The notes under the pieces were generated by a model. It made no database searches, was not told where the DNA came from, and saw nothing but the letters and a program-made list of their open reading frames with translations. Made by a program: the position numbers and the translations under genes. Below, one piece after another: positions 74-28,560 of a stretch of DNA of 64,000 nt. Position 1 is the stretch's first letter, and every line of letters begins with the position of its first letter. Source of the DNA: Takakia lepidozioides (Eukaryota; Plantae; Bryophyta); assembly GCA_030704615.1 (NCBI GenBank), contig CM060732.1, positions 7,626,001 through 7,690,000 on the forward strand, read 5' to 3'.

Positions 74-97
74 AAAAAGTCGTGTCCTCACGGTTTA

Positions 98-3000: not shown

Positions 3001-3853
3001 CCCGAGTATCAAGTATGCAAGAATCAAGAATTATTTGGGCAATGACTGGACCGGACACAATGATCGGAGACTTAGCAGCAGTGCCCTGTAACCTCTTCAT
3101 CTCGTCCACCAATCCGTTGTACATTAACTCCGCCCAAGCGACATCCTCTCCCCTCAAAGCTTTCAGGATCTCCTTTGTGAATGACCTGCTCAAATACTGT
3201 TGGTTCTGTTTCATGGCAAACAGAACGTTCAAGATTTGGCCAACTTCCCTTAGCCCTGGGTACTCGGCTTTGGTACAAGCAAAACCTTGAGTTTTAAATA
3301 AACTCCCTTCTTGGAACAAATTCCCTATCTGCAATCTTGTCCTGTGCTCATCCACATCCACATGTCCTGATGGCAAATCAAACAATTGCTGCAGGTACTG
3401 GGGAGTAATTTCTATATCTACTCCCCTCACCTGAGTAACTCCTGTCCGAGGCTCAAAGTTCTAAAGAAATTGTATCATGAACTGCCGATGATGCAAGGAC
3501 CAGTCCTTGCGTAGCAGTCCCTCCAATCGCAGCTCCTTCAGTAGCTGCACCGCCTGTGGTGTACCAATCGTTTGCTTCTGTAAGATTGTGGTGCTCTTCA
3601 CCCTGATATCCTCCATTCCTCTCACTCTCTTCATTCTAGACAAACAGAAAGGTTTTTGTTGTAACAACTGAAGAAACGTCTGTAGGGCACAAAGCATAAA
3701 AGTATGGTTGGCACTGAATGCATTAATGGGCCCACAATTAGTTGCTGTACCGGGTAGGTACTTTGACGGCCAATTTTGTCTTCCTTCTTGATGACACTCG
3801 TTCTTGCAATTCATGACTGGCTGTGTATCTCGCCCTGGCGTCCACGTGTCCAT
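98..3853 (-). pseudogene. Large extra ORF downstream of pol (~1250 codons; Athila-ORF/env-like N-terminal domain plus long coiled coil), broken by three in-frame TAG stops
   Basis: ORFs 3461-3853, 629-3430 and 98-553 share one frame and are separated only by TAG codons (3461, 629, ~605). The N-terminal W..HHRQFMIQFL*NF...VRGVDIEITPQYLQQLFDLP resembles the plant-transposon (Transposase_32/Athila) domain. The central region is a Q/E/L-rich coiled coil. Confidence 0.7.
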
Positions 3854-3871
3854 TTCTAAACCTGCCTCCGT

Positions 3872-6800
3872 CTACTTTTCCGCCGGCCACTCTCCGGATG
3901 TTAACCCACGTCCACCTGTCACTGATCCTATGGACTGTGTAACCCCGGTAGGCTGTGTTGAGCTGTGATAGGCTGTGTGGCACTGTGATGGGTTGTGATA
4001 GGCTGCGTCACGCTGTGATGGGCTGTGATAGGCTGTGTGACACTGTGATGGGCTTTGATAGGCTGTGTGACACTGTGATGGGCTGTGATAGGCTGTGTCA
4101 CATTGTGATGGGCTGTGATAGGCTGTGTCACACTTGTACTGCCCGCCCTGGTCATATACGCTCGGCTTAGCGACAAGTGCTCCATACTCCGTTGGTATCA
4201 CTGGCGCAGCCCGTGACTGCTTTTGCGTTTCAACATGCAAATCGTGCTGCAATGGTTTGTCATGGATACCACTGTACCCCTTCAACTTATTGGCATTGAC
4301 TCTTCCCAGCATCTCTTTGTTAATGGTTTGTAACATGGCGGTGTTGTTATCATACATCTTCTGTATGACATAAGGTCCTTTCCATGGTGATTTAAGCTTA
4401 GAAGCTTTAATCTTCCCCTTCTTCTGCAACCAGAGAACCAAATCTCCCGTCTTAAAAGTCTTTAATTTGCCTTCATCAAACTGTTCCTTCCTCTTCATCT
4501 GAATTCTGGTCATGTTATCAGCTGCATCAGCACGTACTTCTTCCACATGGTATAATTCATGTTTCCTGACCTTAATTGAATCTTCCAATTCCATTCTCTT
4601 TCCCCATTCAGTTCTCATGGTAGGTAACAAGAATTCCACTGGAAGTAAAGCTTCCATACCATAAACTAATTGGAATGGTGTATACTTAGTGGTGACTTTA
4701 TATGAAGTCCTGTATGACCACAAAGCTGTCAGCAGCTTTGTATCCCAATCCGTTCTGTTTGCATTGACTATCTTAGCCAAGATAGTACATAGTATTTTGT
4801 TGGTAGCCTCTGCCTGCCCATTACCCTGTGGGTAATACGTTGTACTCTTCCTATGCACAATCATGAACTCTTTAGTCAATAGTTCAATGGTCTCATTAAT
4901 GAAGTGACTTCCCTGGTCACTGATAAATTCCAAGGGACAGCCAAATCGTGTAAGTATGTTCTCATACAGGAACCTTGCTGTGGACTTGGCTGTGTTGTCC
5001 CTCAGAGCTTTAGCTTCCACCCACTTCGTAGTATAATCAGTGGCTGTAATTATATACTTGTTCTGTGTATTCTTGGCCGGTGGGTTAATTGGTCCAACAA
5101 AGTCTAGTCCCCATTTCTGAAATGGTTCAGTAGGCATCGTAGGATGCAAAGCCATCTTCCCAGATCTCTGCAAAGGTCCTAGCCTCTGACATTCATCACA
5201 ACTCTGACAATACTTGTGTACATCTTGAACAAAGTAGGCCACCAGTAACCTGCAAGTAGTATCTTCCTACTGGTAGTCTCTTCTCCAAAATGACCTCCAG
5301 CCACTCCTTTATGAACTTCCTCCAAAACTTTATTTACTTCATGGTGGTACAAGCATCGTTTAAGTACTCCATCAGGTCCTAGCTTATACATTCTGCCCCC
5401 TACCATAGTATAAGGTAAAGCCTTGATAGCGATTCTCTTCCTCTGCTCCTTACCATAACTAGGTGGGCACTGACCATGAGTAAGGTAGTATCTGATTGGC
5501 CACTGCCAATCTAACCATTCATCTGCACTTCCTTGCACCTCCATTGCAAATAAACTCGCATCAGGTAATTGGTCGTCTACTCCTGTGGCGGGCTCTCCTG
5601 TTGTTAGGCGTGACAAATGATCTGCCACAAGATGCAAACGGCCAGGCTTGTAAACAACTTCGAACTCAAACTCGTGCAAGATTATTAACCACCTTGCTAT
5701 CCTTCCACTTATCAAAGGTTTGTTCACCAGATATATCAGAGCCTGGTGATCCACATAAAACATAAACTTTCTTCCCAATAGGTAATGCCTGAATTTCTTG
5801 ACTGCATAAATCATTGCCAGTGCTTCTCTTTCAGTTGTGCTATAGTTCCTTTCAGCACTGTTCATCAACCTGCTAGCATAGTACACAGGTGAATCTATAT
5901 TTCCTGTAACATTTTGGGCTAACACCGCTCCCAACGCTTCTCCTGAGGCATCACAGTGAACATGAAATACTACATGCCAGTGAGGGTTAATCAGCACAGG
6001 TGTAGTTGTTACTGACAATGTAAGTTCCTCAAAAGCCTGTTGACATTCAGCTGTCCATGCAAACACTGCATCTTTCTTCAGAAGCTTGCTCAATGGTGCT
6101 GCTATCTGTGCATACCTTTTGACAAATCTTCTGTAATAACTGGTTTGTCCAAGGAATCTCCTTAGACTCTTAACATTTACTGGTGGTGGAGAGGCTTTAA
6201 TGGCCTCTGTCTTCTGGGATCCACAAGAAGTCCCCTCTTACACACAATGTGTCCCAAAAGCACCCCTGAGTTCACACAGAAAGTACACTTCTCTGGATTC
6301 AGGCCCAGACCTCTCATCCTGCATCTGGCCAAACATAACTCCAATTTATGCAAGTGCTCATTCTTAGAGCTGTACACACTGAAATCATCCAAGAACACCT
6401 GCATGAAATCATCCAGATACTCATGAAAAGATTCACTTATCACTCTCTGAAAGGTTGCTGGTGCATTACAAAGTCCAAAAGGCATGACTTTGTATGCATA
6501 AGCACCCCAGTCTGTGATGAAAGTTGTCTTTCCCTGGTCTTCTTCTGCCACTTGCACTTGATTATAACCACTGAAGCCATCCATGAATGAGTACATCTCA
6601 TGGCCTGCCACAGTGTCCAATACCGCTTCTGTGAATGGCAAAGGAAAATGATCTTTCTTTGTGCAAGCATTCAACTTCTTATAGTTCACACAAACTCTCA
6701 GTTTACCATTCTTCTTGGGAACTATCACAATGGGTGACAACCAAGTTGTATACTCTATCGGGTATATAAACTTAGCCTCAGCCAACTTCTTGATCTCTTC

Positions 6801-8017
6801 TCCAACCTTCTGTGCATAGTTGGGATTCATTCTGTACCTTGCCTGTTTGATTGGTACTGACCCTGGTTCCAGTTCAATCTTATGCTGACAGATCTCAGGT
6901 GGTATCCCTTTTAGATCCTCGTAGCTCCAAGCAAATACATCTCTGTATTTGATGAACAAACTCTTAGCTTCTTCAAAGAATTCTGGCTCCAAATCAGCCC
7001 CTACCTTCACCATCCTCGGTTCCTCTTCAGTTCCCACATTCACTTCTCTCACCTGCTCATCAGCTGTGATTGTCCAACCAGTCACCACTTCATCCTGTAA
7101 ACTCACAGTGGCTGGTTCCTCTAGGATTTCCATTTCTCCTTCTCTTTCTTCATAAAAATGTGGTGGGTAACTGCTTATTTCACCTTCAATTGGTGTTGCT
7201 GTCACTACACCACAGCAGATACCTTTTAAACAACTTAGGCCTTCCAGCTGCATCTCTGCAACCTGCTCCCACTCTGGGTGTGCAGCGAACAGGGTAGCTT
7301 CCTGCTCCTCATCCAGTCCTCCCCTCCAGTCATACTCCCTGACCCCTCGAGGTCTTCTCGTAGCAGGTAATCTACTAGATTTCTTAGTGGTAATTTGTAT
7401 CTTGTGCATCCCATTATGCACAGTTAGTAACTGGGAATTCCAGTCATGGAATACCCTGGCCTGTTTCAGCCACGGACGTCCCAACAATAAGGAGTAAGCT
7501 TCCATGACTTCATCCATTTTAACACAGTTACTGTGATCATAAAGATCATCTTTTGAATCTGTATCTTAACTCCTCTTATCAATCCCAATGGCTGTACACT
7601 TCTTTGATCTGCCATTGTTACTGTAAATGGGGCTGGTTTCATGTTACTTAGACCAAGCTTCTGCCTTAATTGGTCTGTCATGATATTCACTCCAGAGCCT
7701 CCATCTATCAGTACATCAGTTAGTTCTGTGCTTCCAATTCTCAATTGGATTACTGGCATAGAATCATCAAAGTCCATGACTGTTTCTCGCCCTTCCGGCT
7801 TCACATTATAACTGGTCACCTTGCTGTTCAGGTCTGTGTTTCCTGTCACATGGGCAATTCGATTGATTGCTTGATACAGCCTGTGTCTACAATAAGGTGC
7901 CACAGCCAATAGCTGTCCAATGGTAATCTCTGCTTTGGTTTGGCATATTACTTCAGCCAAAGTCCCTTCATTACTCTGCATGTCTGCAGCTTCTTTCTTC
8001 CTTTCATCCTCACTCAT
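3872..8017 (-). pseudogene. pol: pol (aspartic protease, RT, RNase H, integrase), frameshifted
   Basis: PR VLIDGGSGVNIM (7466-8017); RT LRVCVNYKKLN...DGFSGYNQ...FLDD (6177-7517); RH HCDASG...YYASR...EREALA (5179-6093); IN GGH...CQSCDEC, WGLDFVGP, ISDQGSHF, NGQAE, WKGPY (3872-5242). Confidence 0.95.
3951..4132. repeat. 30-bp tandem repeat (about 6 units) built from 10-bp GGCTGTG-type subunits
   Basis: Unit cactgtgatg-ggctgtgata-ggctgtgtga; translates as CxTAYHSPSQ repeats at the integrase C-terminus. Confidence 0.9.
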
Positions 8018-8074
8018 TCTCCATCAGAATCAGAGGAATCTGCCATAGGAATATCAGTACTCTTCTGCATTTCC

Positions 8075-10258
8075 TTATGGTATCTGCCACTTCTTGTGCA
8101 GTTCTTTCTCATCTCTCCAAGCCTCATCATCTTCAGGCACATCACTGCCATCTTCATTATCATCATCTTCCTCAACTACTGGAGGTATTAGTTTGGCTTT
8201 GCTTCTCGTTACTATCATTGTACTTACTTCTGGTACAACACATGGCCTAACCATGTGAGCTGCCACCACTGGGCCCTCATTCACAGGAGCTCTCATCTCA
8301 TTCTGGTGTCTAATCCAGAATGAACAGGCTGCCTTGCGATGTCCTGCCTGATTACAATAGTAACACAGTTCTTCACCATTGGGTCCTCGCCCTTGGTCTG
8401 CTCTAGGATTATTTCTGTAATCCTGATTCCCTGGCTGGTAATTCCCCCTTGGATTACCCTGATAGTTGCCTCTGGAATTTCCTTGGTAATTCCCTCTTAA
8501 TTACCTCTCCCTTCCATGCCATTGTTATAACCACCAGGCCTACCATAGTGGTCCTGATCACTGTTTCTTCTTGGCTGGGGCTGCACTTGATGCACCCTTA
8601 CTTGCCTAGGTTCTCTTGCAGCTGTCCTTCTGTTGTAGTAACAATTCTCAGTAGAATGGTTATCCATTTTACAGATAGTACAATGTTTCTCCTTCATGTG
8701 GCATTCAGTGGTGGTATGGCCTTCATTCTGGCACTTTGCACACCAAACACCCTTCCTCCAATGTGTTGCAGCCTCTGTGGCATACTTCTTCAAGATTTCT
8801 TCTAATCTTTTCTCATAGTTATCCCTCTTCAACTTCTCCTTCCTCTTACTCTTCCTTTTCAGCTCTTGCTCTTCTTCCTCATCTGACTCATCCTCAGAGT
8901 CCTCATCATCCCTTTTCTCTCTCTGAGCATTCCCAATTGCTCAATTTTGTTCCCTGTTTCAAATGCCTCCTCCACTGTATTATGGGGTAACATATCCACT
9001 TTCTTTGCAACTCTGGTCTTAGTCCACTCACAAACCAAGTCTTCTGTAAACCTGGTGCTGGTACAGCAGCCAACTTTTTCATCATCAATTCCATTTTTTC
9101 CATATACTCCTCAACAGTTTCATGCTTCTTTTGCTTTAAATGTTGTAAACTTCCATACACTTCATCCTCAGTTTTACTTGTCCTGAACCTATTTCGGAAT
9201 GCTGTATTCAAGCCATTCCAGGTTAGGAAATGATTATCAGGGAATCTTGCATACCATTCACTTGCTTTCTTGATAAGTGAACAAGGAAACAATCTCATCT
9301 TGGCATCATCGCCATTCTCATTGTTCACAATACACATGTGCTCAAATTGGCTAATGTGTACATCGGGATCCCCTTTTCCTGAATATATTGGAAAAGGTGG
9401 TTTTGCCCGTGTTGGTTGTAACGCCATCTGTGGCCCTACCCTCTGCTCACTGATAGATGCTGGCCCCCTTGCTGGTGCTGGTCCTTGAGGACCTGTTGTA
9501 GTTGTGGTGGATCTTCCACCAAGTGGTGGCCCCTGAGCACTCCCTGCTACTGGCCCCACGATATTCACAGTATTCCCAGCTCCAGTTGCACTACTTCCCA
9601 CACTCCCTGTCCCCCCAGAGCCAGATCCAGGCTGCCCGCCTGATCCCCCTGAGCCGACACCTTCGTTGGCCTGTGATCCAAGTGCTCCACTTGATCCAGG
9701 TCCAACGGGTTGGGATGTCCTGGTTGTAGTCTCAACCTCAGCTGTTGGGTCTACTTCTTCATACTCTTCCTCTTCCAATTTCTTCTCTCTGTTTTCATCC
9801 TCCAAGTTCTGCCCTTGGGTTTCTTCTTCACTCATGTAACTCAACTGCAATGGTGTTGGAGAGTCTGAACTCTCCGTTGGCTCTGCCACATCCTCTCCTC
9901 CTTCTTCACCTTCCGTTTCAGAAACTGGAGTTCCTGCTTTTGGTGTTCCATGCCAACTCTTATCAAAGATTTCTGTCAAATCTTTTATCCAGGGATGTAC
10001 CTCAGATCTTTCACCTCGTGGTTGATCTTCTTCCCGTACCAATTCCCTTAATCTTTCTTGCAAAGAAAAAGAAGGAGTGGCATCCAACTCTAGTTCTTCC
10101 GGTATGGGTGATGTACTCTCTGATCTTAATGGTGTGAGAGGTCCAGATGATTCCCCTATGTCTATTCCTCTCTCCCAAAGATATGGATAATTAGCTTTCA
10201 GATAACTTTCTTTTTTTGCTGAATATCTCTGGAGTCTAGCTTCTCTTTCATCACTCAT
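8075..10258 (-). pseudogene. gag: gag with three CCHC zinc knuckles, frameshifted
   Basis: Retrotransposon gag core (YSGKGDPDVHI...LFPCSL...A.EWY...LKQKKHETVEEY...FVSGLRPE); knuckles CAKCQNEGHTTTEC, CTICKMDNHSTENC, CYYCNQAGHRKAAC. Confidence 0.9.
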
Positions 10259-10279
10259 GTCCCATGTCTTTCATTTCTT

Positions 10280-11011
10280 TTAATGTGGCAATAACCAAAA
10301 CTCTCTTCTGTAGTATCTCTCGTATATGCCTGGGTTTCTTTCAAGCTTCAATGCACCCTTGGCTATACTAGAAGTCTCCGTTACCATATAACCATATGGC
10401 AAACAAGTCTGGAAAGCTGTTCTTGGTGTGAGTTTGATCCACAGAATATCCTTTGGAATCCAATTCTTTACCAGTACAAGCTCTTTATGCATATGAGTAT
10501 AAACATTCATCTTCTTTTCCTCCAAGCCTTCAAACTCTACTCGCTTAATGGATAGCAATGCTATCACATAAACTAGTGTTGGTAACCAACGTGCTCTTCC
10601 TTTACAGGCCACCTGATAAATCTTTATCACTCCTTTCTCCAGACCCCACTCAGGGTCAGCATCATGCACTCTCTTAAGAATGTTTTCTTTACAACCGTCT
10701 GGCAATTCCAAGAATCTCTGAAAGAATCGTTTGGACAATCTTTCCTTTTCAGTTTCACAGGGAATTTGATTCACATCAAATTCTTTAATTCTCCAACCAG
10801 CATGATCCCACCAAATGCCTGTCACATCTGGTTGTTCATAACCCAGTTCCCCAGTATGGTCGCCAAATGTCGAGCGGCTTTTACTCACCCATCCCTTCGC
10901 TATCCGAGGTGGAAACTCCAAGATAGAAGAGTTGGATATCTCTAAGCACTCAGTCTGCTCAGTACAATCAGTCATGACCTGCAGTTTGTGAATCATGGTT
11001 GTGCTTCCCAT
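10280..11011 (-). CDS. Extra ORF upstream of gag, unknown function (243 aa)
   Basis: Open ATG-initiated ORF between the PBS region and gag, on the same strand; protein-like composition. Confidence 0.6.
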   Translation of the reverse strand: MGSTTMIHKLQVMTDCTEQTECLEISNSSILEFPPRIAKGWVSKSRSTFGDHTGELGYEQPDVTGIWWDHAGWRIKEFDVNQIPCETEKERLSKRFFQRFLELPDGCKENILKRVHDADPEWGLEKGVIKIYQVACKGRARWLPTLVYVIALLSIKRVEFEGLEEKKMNVYTHMHKELVLVKNWIPKDILWIKLTPRTAFQTCLPYGYMVTETSSIAKGALKLERNPGIYERYYRREFWLLPH

Positions 11012-11176
11012 TTGTATTCCTTCTTGCCTTCATGTTATCAATTTACCTTATCTGATACTGAAGCATCAGATTGCTTCAGTATCTTCTTAGTTCCAGTTAA
11101 TCAAACATTCATTTCACAGCTTCACTCATGTCTCTCTACACAGTGTGTTTGTATCGAATAAGTATCAGATTATGAT

Positions 11177-11194
11177 TTATCAGGTACTAGACCA
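11177..11194 (-). other. Putative primer-binding site (tRNA unassigned)
   Basis: TGGTCTAGTACCTG lies 1 nt after the LTR-terminal TGACA; only partial resemblance to a tRNA-Tyr 3' end. Confidence 0.45.
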
Positions 11195-11195
11195 A

Positions 11196-11764
11196 TGTCA
11201 AAGTGACTCTAATCCGCCCTACAGTATCACTACAGCTCTGCATGAAATAAACCTCCATCAAGTCATCATCTCCTCTTCTATGTAATCGTCATCCCTGTGC
11301 TCCAAGATCGTGCCCTCCGTCTGACCTTTCCCCTGATGTCTAAGTAGTGATCTAAGAAGCCCCCCCAGAAGTCCCCGCTCTTCGCTTTATCTACCTACAA
11401 GCTGTTCTAACTGCCTTGCTAACTAACCGTCACCCCTGTACCGTGACAACTGTGCAAAACTGCGTTGGGCTGTGACTGGCAGTGATTGGCTGTGACGACT
11501 GTGACGGGCTGTGACGGCTGTGTCGGGCTGTGACTGGCTGTGTCGGCTGTATCGGGCTGTTTCGGGCTGTGTTGACTGTGGCGGCTGTGTAAAGCTGTGG
11601 CGGGCTGTGTCGGGCTGTGTAACGCTGTGGCGGGCTGTGTAACCCCCCCCCCTAAAGCCTGCTGCTGTCACCCCTAAGGCTCCTGTTGATCTCAGTCTGT
11701 GTAAAAATTAAGGGTACCCCACAGAACCTGTAAAAGCGTTAAAGTCCCAAGCAGCCCTCTAGCA
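11196..11764 (-). repeat. 5' LTR (~569 bp, TG...CA)
   Basis: Starts TGCTAG at 11764 (matches the 3' LTR) and ends TGACA at 11196, next to the TGG of the PBS. Confidence 0.75.
11467..11640. repeat. 10-bp periodic GGGCTGTGTC-type array in U3
   Basis: Successive degenerate decamers (gggctgtgac, ggctgtgtc, gggctgtttc, gggctgtggc). Confidence 0.85.
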
Positions 11765-13036
11765 CTTACCCTTGCTTTTGGTTCTTGATGACCACTTCTA
11801 CATGTTTTGGAGTTAAGACACACAAGGGACTTCATAGAAAATAAAATCTCTACTGAAAGCTCTGGCTGTTTTCAACAAAGGTATAGGGCTGCAGCTATAA
11901 CTCTGGCTGCATGGAAACTAGGCTCTGAAATGAAACATCATGGCCTGGCTCGGAAGATAGACCTTGTCTGATAACAAACATTCTTCAAGGCTCTCATATC
12001 ACCGTGATTTCATTGCATGATAGGGGACAGAGGTTTCTGAGTTCCTTTCTTTAACTGGCAGAGCTTTTTATGAGGCTTGCTCATTCATTTGCAATGCTAT
12101 GATACCTTCAGGCTGGCTGTTTTTTTAGGAAGGCGACTTATTCAAAAACTGGAGTCTAAAACAATAACCTTTCGACAAGTAGCCTAGCATGACAGTTTTA
12201 AATACTCTTTCATGGCCTAAACCTGGTCATGATACACCTTGCTAGGTGTAGAGATATTCGCACTTAGATAAAACTAAGCAAGAGAGACACTTGTTGCTTG
12301 AAGGGCTTGGTTCTGGAGATTATCTCCAGACCTGCAAATCTGGTTTCTGAAATGAAGGTACAATCTGCAAGTATAGGGGAATTTTTTATTAAACCATGGT
12401 GCTTTCATGATATGATTGACCTGGAATTCTGAGTTATTTATTTTTTACCCTGGCAGAGCTGTTTATGAGGCCCCGGAATACCAATCCAGGCTTGCATATG
12501 CCTGAAAAAACTCAGCCCCGTTTCTACTATATGAATCTTGCATGTGTCTTAGCACTGATAGAGGTTTCAAGCCAACACAGGATGCCTTTTTAGGAAGATG
12601 AATGGCTCAAGAACTAGATTATGTAAGGCTTGACCCATGTCAACAAAAAATGAGGAATCATTATGTCAACAGGCAAATGCTTAAGACATGTATGGCTTGT
12701 TGTTTCAATTGCAATTTAAAGTACTATGTGCTTGGCTCTCAAGATTTATCTCCAGACCTACAATCTGGTTTTTGAAATGATGTTACAATCGGCAAGTATG
12801 GTGGTGATCGTTGTATGTCAAACTATGGTGCTTTCATAATATGATTGACCAAGAATCCCACCCTCCCACCCTGTTTTTTTCAGATACCCTGAAATGTAAT
12901 GGGATATTCAAATGAGATGGTAAACATGGAAGTGGTTATTAGATGGTGCCCTGTAAAGGGCTGTTTTGTCTTTCAATGATAATGACCTTAGTGGTCTTGT
13001 CCATGTGTTGACATGACATGTATATCTTCCCTCTCT
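11765..13036 (+). repeat. Copy 1 of a ~1.27 kb direct duplication
   Basis: Near-identical to 15202-16466 (offset ~3.43 kb). Confidence 0.93.
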
Positions 13037-13840
13037 TTATCTGATCAGTGTACTTGGTGGTTTTTGTATACACCATCTACTCTTCTCCTTTCCTGTTTCA
13101 CCTTCTCATTCTGATGTACTGACAATATTTTTTGAGGAGCCTTGCAGGCAGATAGGCAGCAAACACATTCCAAACTGGAATGATGAACTGAAAGCCTTGG
13201 GGTATGAATCCCCCTTGGCCAGGTATGATCTTCTCCAGCAATAGTATGGTTGATTGATTGGGTATGAAAAGTAAGGCATCCTTTGATGATACCTGAAATA
13301 AGCATAGAGCATCTAAAGGACTTCTGAATGCCGATATTATGAGCTAAGCCCTGGTAAGACAACTTACGGGAATATGTGTACACCTTATACATGATCCGGT
13401 CAATGCACACTACTTTTGTTAGCTAGTCTCTTGTAGCCGATGCCTTATATCAGAATCAGATACCTTATGATTGAGTGACTACCAAGTCCTTTGATCAAGT
13501 GCTTCTATACTTCTCTTAGATATGGCTTCGCTCCTTGTGGCACCATAAAAAAATACCCAACTCTAATCTGTTGCTAGAAGATGTTTTGTCTATATCACAG
13601 GCCTGGTACTACAGACCTGAGCTGCTGCTGTATCTTGACAAGGTTCCTTGAACGAGGTTCCTTCCCTAGCCTGTTCCTCCCTGTGCGAGAGCTTATTTGA
13701 GAAACTGAAAGGTATTTTCTAAAAACTTGTACCTATCCAGAGCTAAGTATACCACTGAACTCTCTGTTCTTTTCTCGTTATACTATACCAGTCTTGCTAT
13801 GATACACTTTATGCCAATGTTTCATTCATGACCGGAGGAA

Positions 13841-14031
13841 GAGAGGATGTAGGATTCTACTCCCTTGGATAATATAATCTAAGGATAGAACTACATGGAA
13901 GAGGGGAAACCTTATGAGAAGGGGTCTGGTATGCACTCCCTTACGGGGTGAGTGCATACCACACTCCATCCGTAAGGTTCTGCCATGCCAGGGGATTGGC
14001 TGGTGGGTCCCTCTCTCTCTCTCTCTCTCTC
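13841..14031 (+). ncRNA. Structured RNA module homologous to the Penelope-like element 3' UTR, followed by (CT)n
   Basis: Stem TGGTATGCACTC(13927-13938)/GAGTGCATACCA(13950-13961) and flanking hairpins match the reverse complement of 18462-18630; (CT)10 at 14011-14030. Confidence 0.65.
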
Positions 14032-14097
14032 CCTCTCCCTCTATAACTCTTTGGATTTCATCTGGCCTTAACCTTTTTAATTCTGGTTATTTGGTTG

Positions 14098-14482
14098 TTC
14101 ATCCCAATTCCCTTTTCATCCAAAACTGGATGAATTTTTTGAAGGATGATGACGCTTACTCTGCATTTTTTGGTTTTTCATCCTAATCTCCTTTCTCATC
14201 CAAATCTGGATGAAATTATTAGGATGATGACCCTTACTGTGCATAAATCTTGGTTTATCATTTGTTTTCTTTTTTTTCATCCAAACGGGATGAATTCCAT
14301 GAATGATGGTGACCTATTTTAATCCAGGAGAGAGTAATTTTACCATCATTTATTATAAATGATGGCAGTTATTAAACTTGAGCCTATACCCTAACCCTAA
14401 AAGTTACCTTTTTAATGGATGTCATCCATTGACAAGTGCATCTCCTGCTAGAATGCGACTTTTCATCCCCCCTGGATGAAAA
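14098..14482. repeat. Degenerate ~80-bp repeats carrying TTCATCC-N6-7-GGATGAA hairpins
   Basis: Palindromic motif near 14116, 14196, 14277 and 14462. Confidence 0.6.
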
Positions 14483-15201
14483 ATCGGGGATCTGTGCCCT
14501 AAGCAGGTCGACACCTTTCACAGCACAGAGCTCGTGCTTCAGGGATCCTTGATGATGCGTCGTGTAAATCTGCTCCCCAACTGCTGCATGGTACCCGTGA
14601 TGGCTGGCTCTTGGGATGCGCATTGGCGGTTATGCAGATTCTTCTCTGGCAGGTGACAAAGCGATGATTGTTTTGCTCCGACCCTCATGGTTCTTTTTAA
14701 TTGCAGCGGCGCTTTTACTCCTCGTTGGGAAGTACTCTACCCCTATTTATCTACAGGTTACATATGGCTCTTTCACTTTGTATGAGCTCTTCTCTATCTA
14801 TGAACCCTTCTGCTGTGATTGTGTTCTGTTGGAGACGATCTGTTGGACGCCATGGCGCAGGGCATACCGCAAACACTCAAGATCTTTTGAGGTTACCCTT
14901 GCTTGAATTGTGATCTGTACATGCTTTAGAATTCAGCACTGACATGGATAGCAACTGTGAAGACCTGCCACTCACCTGATGCATCCTCACTAACACACAT
15001 CTTTATGTGGTGGTTTTTGGGATGGGCACAGGTGAGGGTCTTCACTTGTCTTGAATTCTTGAAGCTTGCAGAGTCTGATTCTTGCATAAGGGATTGCTGC
15101 TACCGCCTGAAGCTGCTGATGCCAGTTGCTGTTTCAAATCTGCCACCTTGCTGCCTCAAAACGGCTTCAAGTCGGCTGTAATGAGGATCACCTTCTTACT
15201 C

Positions 15202-16466
15202 CTTACCCTTGCTTTTGGTTCTTGATGGTTCTGATGTTTTGGAGTTAAGACACACAAGGGACTTCATAGAAAACAAAATCTCTACTGAAGGCTCTGGTTG
15301 TTTTCAACACAGGTATAGGGCTGCAGCTATAACTCTGGCCGCATGGAAACTAGGCTCTGAAATGAAACATCATGGCCTGGCTCGGAAGATAGACCTTGTC
15401 TGATAGCAAACATTCTTCAAGGCTCTCATATCACCGTGATTTCATTGCATGATAGGGGACAGAGGTTTCTGAGTTCCTTTCTTTAACTGGCAGAGCTTTT
15501 TATGAGGCTTGTCATTCATTTGCAATGCTATTGTACCTTCAGGCTGGCTGTTTTTTTAGGAAGGCGACTTATTCAAAAACTGGATTCTAAAACAATAACC
15601 TTTCGACAAGTAGCCTAGCATGACAGTTTTAAATACTCTTTCATGGCCTAAACCTGGTCATGATACACCTTGCTAGGTGTAGAGATATTCGTACTTAGAT
15701 AAAACTAAGCAAGAAAGACACTTGTTGCTTGAAGGGCTTGGTTCTGGAGATTATCTCCATACCTGCAAATCTGGTTTCTGAAATGAAGGTACAATCTGCA
15801 AGTATAGGGGAATTTTTTATTAAACCATGGTGCTTTCATGATATGATTGACCTGGAATTCTGAGTTATTCATTTTTTACCCTGGCAGAGCTGTTTATGAG
15901 GCCCCGGAATACCAATCCAGGCTTGCATATGCCTGAAAAAACTCAGCCCCGTTTCTACTATATGAATCTTGCATGTGTCTTGGCACTGATAGAGGTTTCA
16001 AGCCAACACAGGATGCCTTTTTAGGAAGATGAATGGCTCAAGAACTAGATTATGTAAGGCTTGACCCATGTCAACAAAAAATGAGGAATCATTATGTCAA
16101 CAGGCAAATGCTTAAGACATGTATGGCTTGTTGTTTCAATTGCAATTTAAAGTACAATGTGCTTGGCTCTCAAGATTTATCTCCAGACCTGCAATCTGGT
16201 TTTTGAAATGATGTTACAATCGGCAAGTATGGTGGTGATCGTTGTATGTCAAACTATGGTGCTTTCATAATATGATTGACCAAGAATCCCACCCTCCCAC
16301 CCTGTTTTTTTCAGATACCCTGAAATGTAATGGGATATTCAAATGAGATGGTAAACATGGAAGTGGTTGTTAGATGGTGCCCCGTAAAGGGCTGCATTGT
16401 CTTTCAATGACAATGACCTTAGTGGTCTTGTCCATGTCTTGACATGACATGTATATCTTCCCTCTC
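15202..16466 (+). repeat. Copy 2 of a ~1.27 kb direct duplication
   Basis: Near-identical to 11765-13036; ends in (CT)n. Confidence 0.93.
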
Positions 16467-16592
16467 TCTCTCTCTCTCTCTCTCTGTCTTTTGTCACTCC
16501 CCCAAGAAAAAAAATGCAGAGAGGGAGAGAGGGGGCAGAAGACAGGGGGCAGAAGAGAGAGAGAGAGAGAGGCGGAGAGAGGGGAGAGAGAC
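16462..16592. repeat. (CT)n followed by (GA)n-rich microsatellite
   Basis: Direct reading. Confidence 0.9.
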
Positions 16593-18742
16593 AGGGCTTG
16601 TCTTGACAAGTATATTCAAGGACCAGTCTTCTCCAGATCTGGTCTTTGCAATTTTAGGACAAAAAACAACTTTGAAAAAGCACTATCACTAGTTTTATCA
16701 GTGCTGTGATTTCATTATGACCAAATCTTTGTCAACAATCATGTTCAGTTCTTTCTAAGAGCTTAACATCCTCCTTAATCCACGCCCATGAGAGATGGGT
16801 GGGTGGGTGGGATGTTTTATCAATTATAACACAGATCAAACATTCTTATGTACATCAGCCTTTTTATTAGTTTGCTTTCCTGCTAGGTATTTTGCCATAC
16901 CCATTCTAAGAGTCTAACACCCCCCTTACTTCCCAAAAGAGGGTGGGTGGGTGGTTGTTTGGGCACTTAGAATGTCACTCAGGGCAGATTCCTAAAAAAT
17001 GTATTAGATACAAAGGTCTCTGGCAACTTATAAAGTTACCATCTATCCTAGGAATCTGAAAAAACAGCAGCATACATCAGATAAAATGGCCAAAGGTAGC
17101 TTATCTCCAGTAAAGCTACACTTCTTCAAGAATCTGAAAAGCAGCAACCTCCATGAACTTTCAATTCATTGCTGCTGGAGGTTAGACAAAAACATGTGTT
17201 GCATGCATTTTAAAAGCGGTAATCAACTTAGAATGTAAATCAGAGCAGCTTCCTAACCCTTGTACATCTTTGCAAAGGTAGGATCAGGCTATCTGAAGTC
17301 CAAAGCAATCTCAGCTTTTACCCTCCTCTGACATGTAGAACAGCAAGGTGATTGTTGCTACACCTTACAGTGCTATCTCTACAGTGTGTCAGCCATTTCA
17401 AAATTGTTGCAAACTTTTTGCCATAGACAGACTATTAGGTATCGTGCTTTCTCATTTCTAAGAGCCTAGAACCAAGAACCACCCATAAGGCACCCAAAGA
17501 TGGTAGGCGGGTTGATTTTTTGGCGCTTAGCATGTTCCTCAAAGCAGTTTCCTAATACCTGTCCTGTACTAAGAAAAATACAGCAGCCACAGTGCCAAGC
17601 TATCTGCATTCAACAGGGCTACTAGCTGACAGTAAAATCTGAGATATCAAGCAATGACATGACAGTAGTTACGGAGACATTATACTGTCTGAGAACAGCA
17701 GCTCATATCCTCTGTCATTCAGGTCTGAAGTATTGAGCATGCAAAACACTAGAACCAGGCCTGGGTTTCTACTTCCCTTAAAAAGCCTTTCAATCCAAAG
17801 CCTGCCCTCACATGGTGGGCTCGAGTCACCCTTGCTTCCTGCAACATGTGGCAGCATCCTTCCTTTCCTCATCTTTGTATAGAGTAGCTTAACGTATCAT
17901 GAAAATCACAGCACCCTTACCTATGCCCGTCCCAAGAACCCACCACAAAGGTGCCAGTTAGTGAGGATGCATCAGGTATCATGTGCGTGCTTGCTATCGC
18001 TGTCAAACATGCTATGGAAAGCAAACAAAGATGTGTGCAACCACTACAATCTTTAAGACTTGTGGAAGCAACGCAGCTTGAGCCATTTGATCCCACTCGC
18101 GATACGCAGCAGAAAAAAACAGGTAATGCGAGTAAGGGAGAGAAATTGCTCCTGTTATAGCCATGGCAATCATCTTAGGTTTTCTAGGAGTAAATGCTGC
18201 TGGCAGGAATGAGGAGCGCCAAGGTGTAATTCGCCGTCTTCTATAATCAAAACACCATGCAGGTGTCTCCTCCCGCAGTTCCCAAAGAGCTGCATTGCTG
18301 TGAGATGATGCCTGGAACCCTAAAATCTAGAAGGTTGCTTGTGGGCATGGATGGATGCTTAATTTGCATCCAGATTCCATTCGTCCTTTCAGATTTAATA
18401 TATCAGTTAATCGCAGAATTTGAATGAAAATTCCCCAGGATTTAGAGAGAGAGAGAGAGAGCCCACCATCCAACCCCTGGTATGGTAGCTCCCTTTGCAG
18501 GGTGAGTGTGGTATGCACTCACCCCGAAAGGGAGTGCATACCAGACTCAATCACTGCATAAAATCAACTCTCTTCCCTACTATGTAGCTTGAACTTTTGT
18601 ATATAGTTCAAATGACCCTACATTCTCTCAAATACCTGTTATGATTTTAGTTCAGGAGTTACCTTCTAGTGTTTTAGTCAACTCCTCAATCTCATAGAAC
18701 AGGTCCGGGAAGGAATTTCCAGTAAGGAATCTGATCATAAGG

Positions 18743-21100
18743 TTAAAAGATCTTATATGGGTTAAAGCCATTCTTTACCAAGGCTTTACCTAAGATCTTT
18801 AATTCTTCCAGGGCAAAAAAGAAGTTACTGGAAAGGTACAAAATCGGAAGTGCTTGAGAACAGACCACATTGTATGACTGCTTTACAGGTATGTTTGAAA
18901 AGCATTGAATATACTGTGTATAAGGGCAAGGAAGTTTCCTTCTCTTGTCAAATTTCTTGAAAGAGAATTCCCCAGTGACATGATTAGTAATTGACAAGTG
19001 GAGGTTCATGAAACATACCTCACTGCCAAGCTCAGAGTCATGTGGGGCTGTATGGATGATATCAGGTTGAATTTCCACAACATTCAAGGGGTAAATCCAC
19101 CATGGATTTTCCATATCCCTTGTGGATGAAGGATCCAGAAACTGGCATGCCCTTCCGACATTGACCCAGCATAGATCGTCAATATAACGAAAAACATAAC
19201 GGAATCTGGCCATCAAAGCCGTTTGTCCAAGTTTCGCTAATCTTTGGATAAACTTGATTTCATAAGAGAGGAAGTAGATATTACACCATAGTGGAGAGCA
19301 TGAAAATCCCATTGGGATACCAGAAATCTGCTTCCACACTCTGTCACCCAGACAGATGTAGCAATGGTGCATAAGCCAAAGGTGCAGATTGACTAACCTT
19401 TGTTCAGAAGGTCTTATCCGAGTTCCTCCTTTAGGTGCAGCAGGCCCCCATCTTGCATTTCCAAAAGTATTCTTTGCTGGGTTGTATTTAACCCACAGTA
19501 GGTGTGAACTCCTCGTATGTTGTGTGTGGTATTGCTGAAAGGCAATTTTAACCACAAACTGTAGGGCATCCCCAAGATTGTCTTCTCCTGAAAGTGGGAT
19601 ATTCTCATAACACCTCGTGATATCAGCGACAAAAATGTCATGAATCCTCTCAGGTAAGTTCAAGGTGAAGTCCATGATTGAGTCAATGATCCAGTACATA
19701 GATGTGGCAACTTTCATGAGTCTACCATATGTATCAGTTCTGGTTTTGACCCACATTTTGATCAGGAGTAACACTTGTAAAAAAGCTTGAGTAAGCAACT
19801 GATCCAGCAAACTGAAAATGCTATTATGGGCATTCGCAATCCATCTGTACTTTTTCTTATGGAGCTTGTATGTACCCATAAGGTATGGTAGCTTTTGAGA
19901 TTGTACAGGGATTTCAGGGAGAATCTCTTGCAGCTGCAATAGCAAGTCATTGATCACCAAGGAAGGTGGAGACCATACCTGCCCTGTTACGCATGGTAGA
20001 AAGTCTTTTCTCATCAATCTTTGGTAGGCCTGCAATCTGATGTGCCTTATGCATAGAAAGCACACATTATTGTTGGCTTTATCTAGCCCAGAAATGAAAA
20101 GATGTGACTGGATCCACGTCAGTTCATCCTTGACATTTGATTGAGCTAAAGGGTTACCTTCATCTCTTTTGAAACAGGAGTGTTTATGTCCAGCCCGTTG
20201 TTTGAGGGTCATCCAACAGTTATCCTTTATCCGCTGCATAGCCACTTGTTTCCAAGAAGCTTGTGGATCCACTCTCAGGAGATCACAACAGTCATCAAAA
20301 GCAGTTGACACCACTGTAACTACCTCCTTCAAAACTGTTTTCCTTAAGGGAATGTGGTTCAAACCTTGCTGCATCATGGCTTTCAGCCTAGGATGTCTGA
20401 TCAGATTTAAATCCATAGATCTGACATGAGAAACATGTTTAGTTCCCTGCAAATGGAATTCCAGAGCCGTTTCTATATCCAAAAAAATTCTGAATCTGGG
20501 TAGTCGTTGACATGCACACTCAGAGACTGAAAAAACTTCCTTATCAAAGAAAAAATCCCTAAACACAGTAGCAGGTCTATAGAGCTCTGAACCACAATGT
20601 TCATGATATTTCCAGCCAAAGATCAAGTCATCTACTTTGGAACTTAACTCAGTTTGTTCCACAAAATCCGAGGCATCTTTGATTAGTTTTTTTGTATTCA
20701 CCCATTCCATAGCCCTGTTAGGGTAGAGCATATGGATGTATCCAGCCGGGGCAGGGCCCTCAGTCACTTTCAGGAATTTCCTTCCATGGCCATGGGTTTC
20801 CACTGTTCTTGTTTTTTCCTCAACTTCAGGTACAACATCTGCAAGAAAGTCCAGAACACATACCATGTGGTGGTTAGATTCCTCCCCAATTTGCAAAGTC
20901 ACGTCGCTTAATGGGAGAAGCAACTTGGATCCGTGAATTGACATGGTTAGATGATGAGCTCCCAATGTTAACAGTAGGGCCTGATGCCTCCGTGGAGCTG
21001 GAAGGAGTTCTTGGAGAGGGTAATCTGCCAAAATACGATCCCATCCCTCTGCCTCTTTGTCCTCTTCCTGCAGGAGGCGTTCCTCTTCATCTGGTAGCAC
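18743..21100 (-). CDS. Penelope-like reverse transcriptase (open 785-aa frame)
   Basis: CxC linker (SECACQ...HVRSMDLNLIRHPRLKAMMQQGLNHIP), DKANNN, KLHK..YRWI, ADITRCYENIP, QISGIPMGFSCSPLWCNIYFLSYE, FRYIDD, and a thumb ending L.KNGF. Confidence 0.88.
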   Translation of the reverse strand: MLPDEEERLLQEEDKEAEGWDRILADYPLQELLPAPRRHQALLLTLGAHHLTMSIHGSKLLLPLSDVTLQIGEESNHHMVCVLDFLADVVPEVEEKTRTVETHGHGRKFLKVTEGPAPAGYIHMLYPNRAMEWVNTKKLIKDASDFVEQTELSSKVDDLIFGWKYHEHCGSELYRPATVFRDFFFDKEVFSVSECACQRLPRFRIFLDIETALEFHLQGTKHVSHVRSMDLNLIRHPRLKAMMQQGLNHIPLRKTVLKEVVTVVSTAFDDCCDLLRVDPQASWKQVAMQRIKDNCWMTLKQRAGHKHSCFKRDEGNPLAQSNVKDELTWIQSHLFISGLDKANNNVCFLCIRHIRLQAYQRLMRKDFLPCVTGQVWSPPSLVINDLLLQLQEILPEIPVQSQKLPYLMGTYKLHKKKYRWIANAHNSIFSLLDQLLTQAFLQVLLLIKMWVKTRTDTYGRLMKVATSMYWIIDSIMDFTLNLPERIHDIFVADITRCYENIPLSGEDNLGDALQFVVKIAFQQYHTQHTRSSHLLWVKYNPAKNTFGNARWGPAAPKGGTRIRPSEQRLVNLHLWLMHHCYICLGDRVWKQISGIPMGFSCSPLWCNIYFLSYEIKFIQRLAKLGQTALMARFRYVFRYIDDLCWVNVGRACQFLDPSSTRDMENPWWIYPLNVVEIQPDIIHTAPHDSELGSEVCFMNLHLSITNHVTGEFSFKKFDKRRKLPCPYTQYIQCFSNIPVKQSYNVVCSQALPILYLSSNFFFALEELKILGKALVKNGFNPYKIF

Positions 21101-22325
21101 CTCTTCCTCTAGTTCCTCCTGAAGATGATCTAGAGTTGGGATTCTCTTGTCTCTGTCTTTTAGCCGGTAACTTGGGAAGGCTATCAGTGAAGCTCCCTGG
21201 TTTAATCAGCTTCTCAATATACCTGGGTCCTTTTGCATCCCCCAAGTCAGCCAATAATTTAGCTTGAGGGTTGTCAGCATATTCCTTTACAGCCCTCATC
21301 ATCATTTCTCTGGTAAACAGAAATGTGATTTGAGCCATAATAGCAGGTCTGGCCACCTTTAGAAGCCAGAACATAAAGCTCTGAAACTTCCCTTTCATGG
21401 AAGGATACTGCTGGTCAGGAAGTAACACACCCAGGTGGTTCAGCATATACCAAATCACTTGATCGAACCATGCCACACTGCCTTGACATCCACTTTTGGC
21501 CCGAGGGTTGCAATTGCAACGAAAATAAGGCCTGTGCCAATTGAATAACTGACTCTTATGATTTTTGGACCTAATCATGCCAGTAGGCATCTCATTCTTG
21601 GTCCTGATCGAAATCCCATCAGCATTCTCACAATGTTTATGGTAGAAGGTCCTCATAGGCCATGCTACAGCAAGGTTAATCTTTTTCAGGTGTTGTATCC
21701 CAAGCACAGCATCATCCTCACATTTCTTGTATTCAGCGTAAATAAGGTTACCCCACTTACTCCACATTTATGCTGAAATCGGAGCTAGTAGATTGAGGTT
21801 GGACTGTGAGTGCCACATCATGTGGTCTTTCTGTGCCAGATCCAACTCCACAGCCCTTGGTGGGCATCCAGGTACAAATGGCAGAAAGCCAGGAGTAGCC
21901 CCTGCAATGGTACTTTGTTCCATCTGAGATTGATCAATCTGGTCACAGAACTCCAGAAATCCAGATTGGTCAGCATCATCAAGCGTGTCCACTCCTAAAA
22001 AGGTCAAGTTGGGGTCAGTGGTGTCTGTTTCAATGACCTTACCACCGATAGAGGACTGAGATAGTCCTTCATCATCATCTTCTGGGTTAGCAGCTCTCAC
22101 AGCGGTTTCTAACTTCACAGCCGTCAATTTCCAAGAGTCTTCATCCTCTTGATCTGTTCTCAAGGTCTCAGCCAGATCTCTGTGGTAATTTTGGATCCTT
22201 TGCAGATAGTTTCCATTCTTGTAGGCACATAAAGCAAGAATCATCCAATCTTCCAAAGCCAGGGTATCCAATAACAGGGTAGGATTCTCACCCGTGTTTT
22301 GACCTTCCACAATGGCATCAGTCAC
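21087..22325 (-). pseudogene. ORF1 of the Penelope-like element (~412 codons, one in-frame TAA)
   Basis: ORFs 21768-22325 and 21087-21767 abut in the same frame; acidic N-half, Cys/His-containing middle, basic RGRG tail overlapping the RT frame. Confidence 0.6.
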
Positions 22326-22450
22326 CCCTCTCGTGCCCTTTCCATCTACACTCTTCGCCCCTTTTCCCTGTCTCTGTTCTTCTTATGCTCGAACCTGAGA
22401 GGGATGGAGTGCGTGCACCAGAGAGGAGACATCGTCGCAAGCTGTGAAAA

Positions 22451-24500
22451 TTGTACTTCGGACGTAGGCCAATGCCGAAGGGGAGGAAGCAGATGCGTCT
22501 ACAGGAGGAGATTGCCAACTCGCAGCATCAGGCCACGCAGGCAACCCAGCCACCAGTGAGAGCTCCGTGCTATCCGGATTCGCCAGCTGATCGAGCACCG
22601 AAAACCCCCTCATTTTTCTTCTGCAATTCTTAGACTGTATGCTAGGAGACTTGAATGCAGAAAATGTTTGCATGCCTAACCGGAAAGGTGGACGTGCTGG
22701 AGGGATCGCAAGAATCCGAAGAGCCGCAGGCAGAGTCCGTGGAGCTAGCTGCAGCACGCACACCCAGCCGATCCACGAGCACGGGTCTTCCTGTCGGGCC
22801 TAGCCCTGTGCGTTTCAAGGACGCGGCTTCGAAGGGCAAGTCTTTGCAGTTCAAAGCCCCAGAGAGCGACTCGCGTTCAAAGGTCATGGAGAATCGCCAG
22901 CAGGGGTCTAGCCCTTCTCCAGCAAAGACGAAGAAGAAGCAGCACGTCGTTCAACTTGTTTCTGAACCGGACCAGGCCGTTTCCTCCCCACCCAGGCGAA
23001 TGAAACAGATTCAATTGCAGCAGACACCTTCACCTGCAAGAATGAGGAAGCAGAAGGCAATCAGGGGGAGGGCGGAGTAGTCTCCCGCAAAACCGATTCC
23101 ACGAGCTGAAGCCCAGTTCCTGCTTGATTTCCAGCCTGGTGATGTTGGGGGCGTCTCTGCTGCAGCGAAGGCAATGGGATCGACCGATTTCGTCGATCTG
23201 GTAGCGGAGGAGGGTGTTGCCGCTCAACGTTCGCAGCAAGACCTGACCACCGTTGAGGAAGATCTTCATAATACTGCAGGCCCGGAGGAGGCCTCTGCAA
23301 TTGCAAACTTGCCCGCAAAGATTCCCTAAAGTGCAGCTCCAGTTGGGGATGCTCCAGCTGCTCAGCCCCTACCGCCACCAGCAGAAATGTTTCTGGAGGA
23401 ATTCCAAAGTGCAGCGGATACAATGTTGGAGGAGACACACAGTAGCATTGGCAGAGTTCTTGGCAGCAGGGTATTCCAGCGGACTCTTCGAATCCCACTT
23501 TGTCGCATGGTCTCCCTTCCCATCGTCAGGCAGACACTTCCCGGAGATGTGGATAAGCTCAAGTTCGCATTTCGAGAAGGGTACCGTCTAGGTTCGCCAG
23601 CCTTCTACGTTTCCCTTGAGAATGAGGACGGCGAATCTCGTGGACCCACTACGGATGAATTGTCAACATGGGATACCCACTGGCACACTCGCAACGACGA
23701 ATTCAAGGCAACGCTGAAGGGTGATCCAGACTTCGGCCATATGTCGGGTAAAATGTTCTTTGTGTGGGACGAGAATCACCGACTTCTTGCCTGGTGGGAG
23801 TACATCAAGCAGAACCATGCCAAGCACATTGGCTGGCATTACATGGTGGAGTGTGTCATCCTCAAGGTGAAGGCGGCAGACTCCTCCCTGCTCAAGAATG
23901 CCATGGCGGACCTCAACTCGTAAGATACTCATACCCTCCCAAGCACGTTCGAAATGCGGTGCCGCATTTCGGTTTCCAATTTGTTTTGTTTCCGTGCTTT
24001 CGTGAACTGGAGAGTGTGCCTTGCAGGGTCACTGAAAATGCGTACGTGCATACCCACATGGCACATATGCTGTACAGGGTGAGGAAAACTGGTCACTGAT
24101 CCGCACATGTTTGCGGAAATGCTGGAGCTCGAGCTCATTCAGAAAGCCGTGGCAAAAACTGACCGGACATGGTATCGTCTCACTATGGATGGAATGGTGG
24201 AGGTGATATACGAAGTAAGTCGTCCTCCCATTTCCCTCTGCTCATCCTTCCCCAATTTTCAGTAATTTTTCCACATGAATCGAATGTAACGCTTCTGCAT
24301 GTTTTTGTTGGCAGTCAAACATCAAGCTGGATTTGGCCCATGCCAAACGCTTCTTCATGGAAAGTGAGGGGCAGGTCAAAACGTTGCAGTCATTGACTGA
24401 GCACTTGAAGGAAGCCGGGGTCAAGTCCAGAACGAAATATAAATCAAAGCTTCTGAAGCTGGTGGCCATTGCAGATCCGGCACTTGAAAGGACTTCATCC
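22451..24500 (+). pseudogene. Spliced ParB/Sulfiredoxin-like domain protein
   Basis: One frame over 22451-23919 with several stops. RIPLCRMVSLPIVRQTLPGDVDKLKFAFREG and MFFVWDENHRLLAW match the ParB-N pattern (DGxHRxxA, here G>E). GT-AG introns at 23920-24026 and 24215-24314. Confidence 0.65.
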
Positions 24501-27143: not shown

Positions 27144-27144
27144 T

Positions 27145-28560
27145 CGGATGAAGTCGTCTCAGGGGGATAGGCCGACACCTGGCCGATTGGGAATATCCCT
27201 CGGATGGAAAAACGGCGCCGAATTTCCATTAGAGACCGTTCGGATGAAGTTGTCTCGGGGGGAGAGGCCGACACCTGGCCGACAGAGAACATCCCACGGA
27301 TGGAAAAATGGCGCCGAATTTCAATACGAGGCCCGTCAGATGAAGTCGTCTTGGAGGAGAGGCCGACACCTGGCCGACAGAGAACATCCCTCGGATGGAA
27401 AAACGGCGCCGAATCTCCAATGAGGCCGTTCGGATGAAGTTGTCTCGGGGGTAAAGGCCGACACCTGGCCTACAGAGAATATCCCCCGGATGGCAAAACG
27501 GCGCCGAATTTCCATCCGAGGCCGTTCGGATGAAGTTGTATCGGGGGGAGAGGCCGACACCTGGCCGACAGAGAACATTCCCCGGGATGGAAAAACGGCG
27601 CCGAATTTCCATCCGAGGCCGTTCGGATGAAGTCGTCTCGGGGGGAGAGGCCGACACCTGGCCGACAGAGAATATCCATCGGATGGAAAAATGGCGCCGA
27701 ATTTCCATCCGAGGCCGTTCAGATGAAATCGTCTCGTGGGGCGAGGACGACACCTGCCGGACAGAGAACATCCCTCGGATGGAAAAACGGCGCCGAATTT
27801 CCATCCGAGGCCGTTCGGATGAAGTCGTCTCGGGGGGAGAGGCCGACACCTGGCCGACAAAGAACATCCATCGCATGGAAAAACAGCGCCGAATTTCCAT
27901 ACGAGGCCCGTCGGATGAAGTCGTCTCGGGGGGAGAGGCCGACACCTGGCCGACAGAGAATATCCCCCGGATGGAAAAACGGCGCCGAATTTCCATCCGA
28001 GGCCGTTCGGATGAAGTCGTCTTGTGGGGAGAGGACAACACCTGGCCGACATAGAACATCCCTCGGATGGAAAAACGGCGCCGAATTTCCATCCGAGGCC
28101 GTTTGGATGAAGTCGTCTCGGGGGAGAGGCCGACACCTGGCCGACAGAGAACATCCCCGGATGGAAAAACGGCGCCGAATTTCCATCCGAGGCCGTTCGG
28201 ATGAAGTCGTCTCGGGGGGAGAGGCGGACACCTGGCCGACAGAGAACATTCCCCGGATGGAAAAACGGCGCCGAATTTCCATTCAAGGCCCGTCGGATGA
28301 AGTCGTCTCGGGGGGAGAGGCCGACACCTGGCCGACAGAGAACATCCCCCGGATGGAAAAAACGGCGCCGAATTTCAGGACGAGGCCCGTCGGATGAAGT
28401 CGTCTCGGGGGGAGAGGCCGACATCTAGCCGACAGAGAACATCCCTCGAATGGAAAAACGGCGCCGTATTTCCATCCAAGGCCGCACGGATGGAGTCGTC
28501 TCGGGGGGAGTGGCCGAAAGAGATCATTTGCAGGATGGAAAAACGGCGCCGAATATCCGT
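27145..28560. repeat. 96-bp tandem satellite (about 14-15 units), each with a CGGCGCCG-centred hairpin
   Basis: Unit cggatgaagtcgtctcggggggagaggccgacacctggccgacagagaacatccctcggatggaaaaacggcgccgaatttccatccgaggccgtt; unit starts at 27241 and 27337. Confidence 0.95.

Follow-up and report, generated by a model that had tools for sequence, protein, structure and literature searches.

A conserved RNA module with two alternative folds precedes the pyrimidine repeat in PLE-X-type elements and in a non-autonomous partner family

The stretch of Takakia lepidozioides DNA analysed here (64,000 nucleotides, hereafter the window) holds two neighbouring elements that face each other and have an RNA-forming segment in common: copy A of a non-coding family on the plus strand and an RT-coding element, B, on the minus strand. 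Copy A consists of a non-coding body (13037-14007), an internal (CT)n tract (14008-14042) placed between the module and the pseudo-LTR, and a downstream pseudo-LTR (14043-16467), in which there is an acceptor-like hairpin (14960-15045) and whose last stretch, a short CT tract (16456-16467), runs into the target (CT)n. A further copy of the pseudo-LTR lies upstream (11772-13036), also with a short CT tract at its end (13025-13036), its left side being cut by the LTR of a gypsy-type element (1-11771, minus strand) that inserted into it. This latter element has gag, RT and integrase matches and includes a 933-aa frame (629-3430) for which no Pfam match was found. Copy A is flanked by two stretches (11765-13042 and 15202-16473) that are 97.5% identical and, based on this, the unit is composed of pseudo-LTR, 970-bp body, module, (CT)n, pseudo-LTR, short CT tract and target (CT)n. 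Inside the pseudo-LTR there is an 80-bp tandem repeat (2.6 copies, 14090-14294) with CATCC/GGATG palindromes.

The sequence-only reading of this locus had suspected that copy A is a non-autonomous partner, and this is supported: profile searches recovered no RT or ORF1 remnant from the family A unit. In a DNA run from the same species, the bins of the copy A body reach summed contig depths of 43,000-252,000, against ~60 for the unique contig of B's RT, which indicates a high-copy family (the summed depth itself being no copy number). One contig of another DNA run spans the module, the repeat and the start of the pseudo-LTR. One DNA contig lacks 13405-13922 and picks up again where the module core starts (its short side being only 26 letters), which hints at a variant devoid of helix i, described below.

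Element B (18463-22330, minus strand) is dead, has two ORFs and is an endonuclease-less element of PLE-X type. Its RT frame (18743-21100) contains the CxC, DKA, GIPMG and YIDD motifs and stops earlier than the frames of its relatives, which match RVT_1 weakly; the CxC and DK(A) motifs mark the RT as PLE-type. ORF1 (21087-22325) is 5'-truncated and in two pieces, with a CxC-X6-C motif (found in 21087-21767, as well as in the ORF1 of the relative L020). Downstream of the coding part come the module (18462-18549, with its G arm at 18475-18462), the internal (CT)n tract (18444-18461) and 1.85 kb of sequence ending at a CT tract, probably the pseudo-LTR of B (16592-18443), all on the minus strand; the latter has an acceptor-like hairpin (17977-17913) in common with family A and a CT-rich tract at its end. 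At 18319-18515, the depth in DNA run X1 is ~50 times that of B's RT, with other sequences following the (CT)n, and on the strength of this the B-type module is carried by more families in the same species. The two elements lie, with their 3' ends facing, at a (CT)n and a (GA)n tract (16459-16591) separated by ~60 bp, having entered these from opposite sides.

Judged by their sequence, these elements fit the PLE-X type (Chlamys clade) of Craig et al. 2021 (PMC8557442), with which they share the lack of GIY-YIG, the CxC motif before the RT, an upstream CxC-X(1-8)-C motif, the occurrence in early-diverging plants and the pseudo-LTRs. No GIY-YIG or other endonuclease domain gave a Pfam match in B or in the intact relatives L001, L020 and L021, and the pseudo-LTR or partial tandem structure known from PLEs is present. 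The PLE-X families described there carry canonical hammerheads, and those of Selaginella target 28S rDNA; in contrast, the elements analysed here have the module in place of a hammerhead core and lie at pyrimidine microsatellite sites. A scan for the hammerhead core over 11700-22500 and 11 relatives returned a single isolated match, and Rfam returned none. Since there is no canonical hammerhead, the elements are relatives of PLE-X and not members of the described families. In a FastTree phylogeny the window RT is placed, with an unsure position, on a long branch near families of the CT class described below.

The common segment comprises 13841-14031 in copy A and 18444-18630 (minus strand) in copy B, which match at 84% over 107 nt (E 4e-24). 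The four-hairpin fold that had been proposed for both copies is real, and far better than that of shuffled sequences (z -7.46 for A and z -5.06 for B, with 0 of 200 shuffles as good). The additional claim that this fold is kept despite sequence divergence was not confirmed: 42 of the 43 nucleotides at 13924-13966 are identical and, most of the common sequence being plain identity, the A/B pair alone offers little covariation. The individual hairpins fared differently. Helix i (13847-13896) does exist, with ATGTAG at 13847-13852, CTACAT at 13891-13896 and an inner hairpin, but it is common to A and B only, is weak in copy B (z -0.8) and is absent from the relatives. The 12-bp stem (13927-13938 with 13950-13961) is perfect and has a TACG loop (TTCG in the partner copy); nevertheless, its UNCG character is not conserved, both loops being closed by U-G rather than C-G and the 12 relatives having other loops (TATAT, for example). 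As for the GTAA/GCAA hairpin, the letters are there but helix iii does not form in copy A, where it scores z +0.4 alone and is missing from the MFE structure. The tetraloops, UNCG and GNRA, are hence ruled out as a conserved feature by the U-G closure and by the loops of the relatives. The CTRCCA/TGGTGG stem, followed directly by (CT)n, is seen in the sequence as described. The four-hairpin fold is just one of two conserved folds, the second of which the earlier reading lacked.

The RT has over 120 relatives (42-51% identity); searches by protein or motif located loci that yielded 12 further RT families with a 3' region, making 14 families together with copies A and B. In 14/14 families the module, whose conserved length is ~90 letters, has a single occurrence per element, downstream of the RT and immediately followed by a pyrimidine repeat, in agreement with the earlier expectations that it adjoins such a repeat and is linked to a PLE RT. 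Ten families have a CT repeat, two have CTT and two have T, and the repeat class covaries with a purine tract upstream of the module and with the tract proposed for priming, at the distal end of the pseudo-LTR. In nine of the ten CT families GA runs of 5-9 nt are found 5' of the module, as are GAA runs of 8-9 in the CTT families and A runs of 5 and 7 in the T families, the background frequencies being 4% for GA runs of 6 or more, 1% for GAA runs of 8 or more and 1.5% for A runs of 7 or more. This purine tract closes the module in most predicted folds; in copy A, GAGAGG (13841-13846) can pair with the start of (CT)n in the MFE structure, and a second purine tract lies at 13897-13907. A motif scan of metagenomes gave 13 matches, 3 of them true and all with RT and repeat; the remaining ten are chance matches, the rest of the module being absent. 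No relatives were found in viral and bacterial collections, the module matched nothing in Rfam at gathering and E-value thresholds, a literature search recovered no description of it and a PDB search came back empty. We thus regard the module as a real, clade-wide and uncatalogued RNA present in the non-autonomous partner of a PLE-X-type element, and very probably as a cis module of PLE-X (Chlamys-clade) elements that this partner shares. Beside one of the related elements lies a Replitron HUH fragment (L001:9000-9230), and elsewhere in the window there are tandem arrays of 96-bp (27144-28517), 53-bp (28705-28995) and 100-bp (60623-61018) units, the first two with a GGCGCC-centred palindrome in each.

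The second fold becomes apparent from the two regions formerly taken as tetraloops, which are reverse complements of each other (13939-13946 with 13970-13977 in copy A) and whose counterparts in copy B changed in step. In each of the 14 families, loop and downstream segment pair better than shuffled sequences do (z -2.5 to -5.9); of the 5040 permutations of seven representative families, the cognate assignment scores highest. Additionally, RNAalifold pairs strand b with the 5' strand of the last hairpin. In copy A, strands a and b occupy 13921-13934, and b (TCTGGTATG) is the switching strand, for which two conserved and mutually exclusive partners were shown. In fold I, b pairs with b-prime (13950-13961, the 12-bp stem mentioned above), the segment complementary to the stem loop (13962-13979, formerly the GUAA hairpin) pairs with 13909-13918, and b-double-prime (13984-13992, CATGCCAGG) pairs with the G arm (13993-14007). 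In fold II, the predicted partner of b is b-double-prime, and CCTTACGG (13939-13946, within the long-stem loop region 13939-13949) pairs with 13970-13977. In the predicted structures, the G arm is thereby locked within a hairpin in fold I and becomes free, directly 5' of the repeat, in fold II. Because the linkers are too short for coexistence, the two folds are alternatives; a simple pseudoknot between the stem loop and the downstream segment was discarded for the same kind of reason (linkers of 0-2 nt).

The b helix of fold II has 105 of 112 cells paired in a single ungapped register, with compensatory change in four of its eight columns, against 34-66/112 cells in slid registers. These pair counts are anchored, a MAFFT alignment setting A and B one column off register and inflating the counts. 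Fold II was predicted from 10 CT-class sequences, and the four families outside this set conform to it (at least 22 of 32 cells, two of the families with a bulge). The b helix of fold I is conserved too, with bulges (4/5040 permutations), its register being less strict than that of fold II. Both folds show compensatory changes across families; given that the families share ancestry, these fold figures are not probabilities and the counts are not independent events. The computed energies of the two folds lie within -8 to +4 kcal/mol of each other in 13 of the 14 families, and copy A favours fold I by 8.5-17 kcal/mol. Removal of the repeat as a trigger for fold II is unsupported, the balance between folds not being shifted by it (8/14 families). 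On these predictions, both folds are probably used. One could argue that fold II, or the G runs, are by-products without a role, left by an old inverted duplication and by the pairing of fold I, since b-double-prime repeats b-prime in direct orientation, and the loop is an inverted copy of its partner. However, loop and partner changed together among A, B and distant families and the register of fold II is the stricter one, and we consider this account highly improbable.

The G arm follows the pattern GG-N(1-3)-GG-N(1-5)-GG-N-GGG in 14/14 families (GG-N-GG-N-GG-N-GGG in copy A), its loops being variable and G-free. In each of 12 loci the pattern is found once per sense strand, exactly at the module end; in the window there are five occurrences on both strands together, two of them at the module. 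Pairing in fold I accounts for some of the G conservation, not for the terminal GGG. In most families the fold II prediction includes a two-tier RNA quadruplex, quadruplexes of this size being marginal and their ViennaRNA energies rough, and we put the chances of the G arm actually forming one at about even. Protein binding could also be the cause of the G conservation. In this line, the module may be a recognition or packaging signal for the RT or the ORF1 protein, RT recognition being the central idea of the sequence-only reading; it would perhaps also constitute the RNA 3' end and a template-jump acceptor, with the left junction arising from the RNA 5' end or from plain annealing at the repeat. 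The non-autonomous family retains the module with all coding sequence gone, as would be expected from such a signal, and the invariant C-Y-A-R-G-G-G and the G runs suit sequence-specific binding; non-autonomous Chlamys elements likewise share 3' ends with autonomous ones (PMC8557442). Nevertheless, a signal of this type has no need for two conserved alternative folds, and the one PLE tested needs RNA at the pLTR-ORF junction and not after the RT (PMC11167929). As sole explanation we find it unlikely, and as a second role it is compatible with the explanation by RT stopping that we develop below.

The right junction is visible in seven insertions (L001, L020, L021, L025, L033 and both window copies). 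In these, a further 1.2-2.4 kb of the element follows the repeat, and a short internal tract of the same repeat class joins the flank; the upstream copy has this tract as well, immediately ahead of ORF1 or the body. The module is thus the end of the element body and not, as the sequence-only reading had it, the 3' end of the insertion, and the same junctions rule out the adjacent (CT)n as the priming site. On the other side, the left junctions of L020, L021, L025 and L006 start at the repeat and exclude the module. Taken together, the positions of the left and right junctions make the (CT)n beside the module the end of the cDNA and not its start, a reading based on four left junctions, of which L021 is the base-precise one: there, the copy of an imperfect T tract extends up to 1-2 nt from the last G, and the flank next to it is non-repetitive. 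A solo pseudo-LTR also lies between two (TTC)n tracts (L020:1737-3842), beside a full element, with a right target tract of 417 bp.

Just before the priming CT tract, each of the two pseudo-LTRs, of A and of B, has a pair of small hairpins of the TGTC/GACA type (16410-16455 on the plus strand, z -3.5, and 16650-16597 on the minus strand, z -1.5), which are a candidate signal for RT initiation; relatives have a GGGATGTA motif near the same place. All pseudo-LTRs examined contain, in addition, a long conserved hairpin with CTAAC and a downstream CAG/GT or TAG/GT (14960-15045 on the plus strand, 17977-17913 on the minus strand), which looks like an intron branch point and acceptor.

Based on these observations, we propose, with a probability of roughly 0.45, that the module is a cis-acting two-state RNA of microsatellite-targeting, endonuclease-less PLE-X elements, acting as a pause or stop switch for the RT and thereby setting the cDNA end. 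It is located between the element body and the internal pyrimidine repeat that precedes the pseudo-LTR. The primer for the RT would be a purine-rich DNA 3' end that has annealed to the short pyrimidine tract with which the pseudo-LTR ends. The RT would then copy the pseudo-LTR and the (CU)n tract and so reach the module. With fold I, it would read through into the body; with fold II, the G arm, probably as a quadruplex on a long helix, would stall it. The stalled cDNA, ending in (AG)n, could then anneal to the target (CT)n and produce the other junction without any nuclease coded by the element. The two folds would fit these needs because the RT must pass the module in order to copy the body, yet insertions also end there. 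RT stopping as the function of the module is held more tentatively, all folding being computed and similar junctions being expected also from annealing at the repeat without a stop signal. The wider formulation is rather doubtful: that an uncatalogued, ancient switch from helix to quadruplex gates a telomerase-related RT between read-through and stop, with both junctions made by microsatellite annealing and the target (CT, CTT or T) set by exchangeable tracts.

The G arm lies directly 5' of the downstream repeat unit, the left end beginning just after it, and a polypurine-tract-like role can also be conceived, in which an RNA remnant primes second-strand DNA and, as happens in LTR elements, thereby defines where the terminal repeat starts on the left. 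The loops of the G arm hold pyrimidines, however, and PLE RTs are not known to have RNase H, for which reason such priming would need a host enzyme; we deem it very unlikely. Slightly less probable still is a telomerase-RNA-like module, in which the RT would copy (CU)n repeatedly, with the fold acting as a bound, and lengthen the microsatellites. A boundary 5' of a repeat template and a competition between quadruplex and helix do recall human telomerase RNA (PMC3351167), and long repeats exist at junctions (the 417 bp in L020), but such long tracts may stem from the host or from slippage, L021 shows its imperfect T tract copied once, base for base, and Rfam gave no telomerase RNA match. The earlier suggestion of a telomerase-RNA-type template is not sustained for the same reason, and also because the module is a cis part of the mobile RNA and not a separate trans RNA with a template/pseudoknot domain.

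Comparison with known systems places the proposed switch in context. The closest in layout is the 3' end of Terminon/Athena elements (PMC6431247), where an endonuclease-less PLE also has a conserved RNA fold directly 5' of a target-complementary repeat; in that case a hammerhead provides the fold and exposes the neighbouring repeat, which primes at telomeres, whereas the module has an unrelated fold, the repeat next to it marks the opposite junction and priming would occur 1.2-2.4 kb away. This likeness of position raises the possibility of a self-cleaving ribozyme or processing site in replacement of the hammerhead. Such a site would cut tandem transcripts immediately 3' of the G arm, giving unit RNAs that start at the repeat, with the two folds as off and on states. 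The left junction at the module edge agrees with it, as does the lack of a hammerhead core in elements whose described PLE-X counterparts have one (PMC8557442). Against it, no Rfam ribozyme matched even at E 5, few unpaired non-G bases are invariant, and the HDV-like order of strands comes without P3, P4 and the invariant catalytic C, which rules out an HDV-like fold; we hold cleavage to be quite improbable. Non-autonomous Chlamys elements such as MRC1 resemble family A in being non-coding, forming pLTRs and having 3' sequence in common with autonomous families, and the available description (PMC8557442) mentions no structured two-state signal for them. Poseidon PAc of Anolis (PMC11167929), for which internal initiation near the pLTR-ORF junction was demonstrated in vitro, has insertions that end at an internal site near the pLTR-body junction; it differs in having an endonuclease and a hammerhead and in starting without target homology, the elements described here ending at a repeat-matched tract. 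Finally, the 5' G-quadruplex and P1 boundary of human telomerase RNA (PMC3351167) provide a quadruplex/helix competition just 5' of the repeat template of a related RT, an analogy without sequence or Rfam match, in which the roles differ, since here the element acts in cis and the quadruplex, not the helix, would be the boundary.

Craig et al. 2021 (PMC8557442) left open how PLE-X elements, lacking an endonuclease, insert at sites other than telomeres. For this question the module offers one short RNA whose alternative helices are named, with a candidate quadruplex and a site at which stopping is predicted. If the proposed mechanism is true, the module would amount to a naturally occurring RNA switch for an RT related to telomerase, functionally comparable with the telomerase template boundary, and the choice of target would be set by RNA across three repeat classes.
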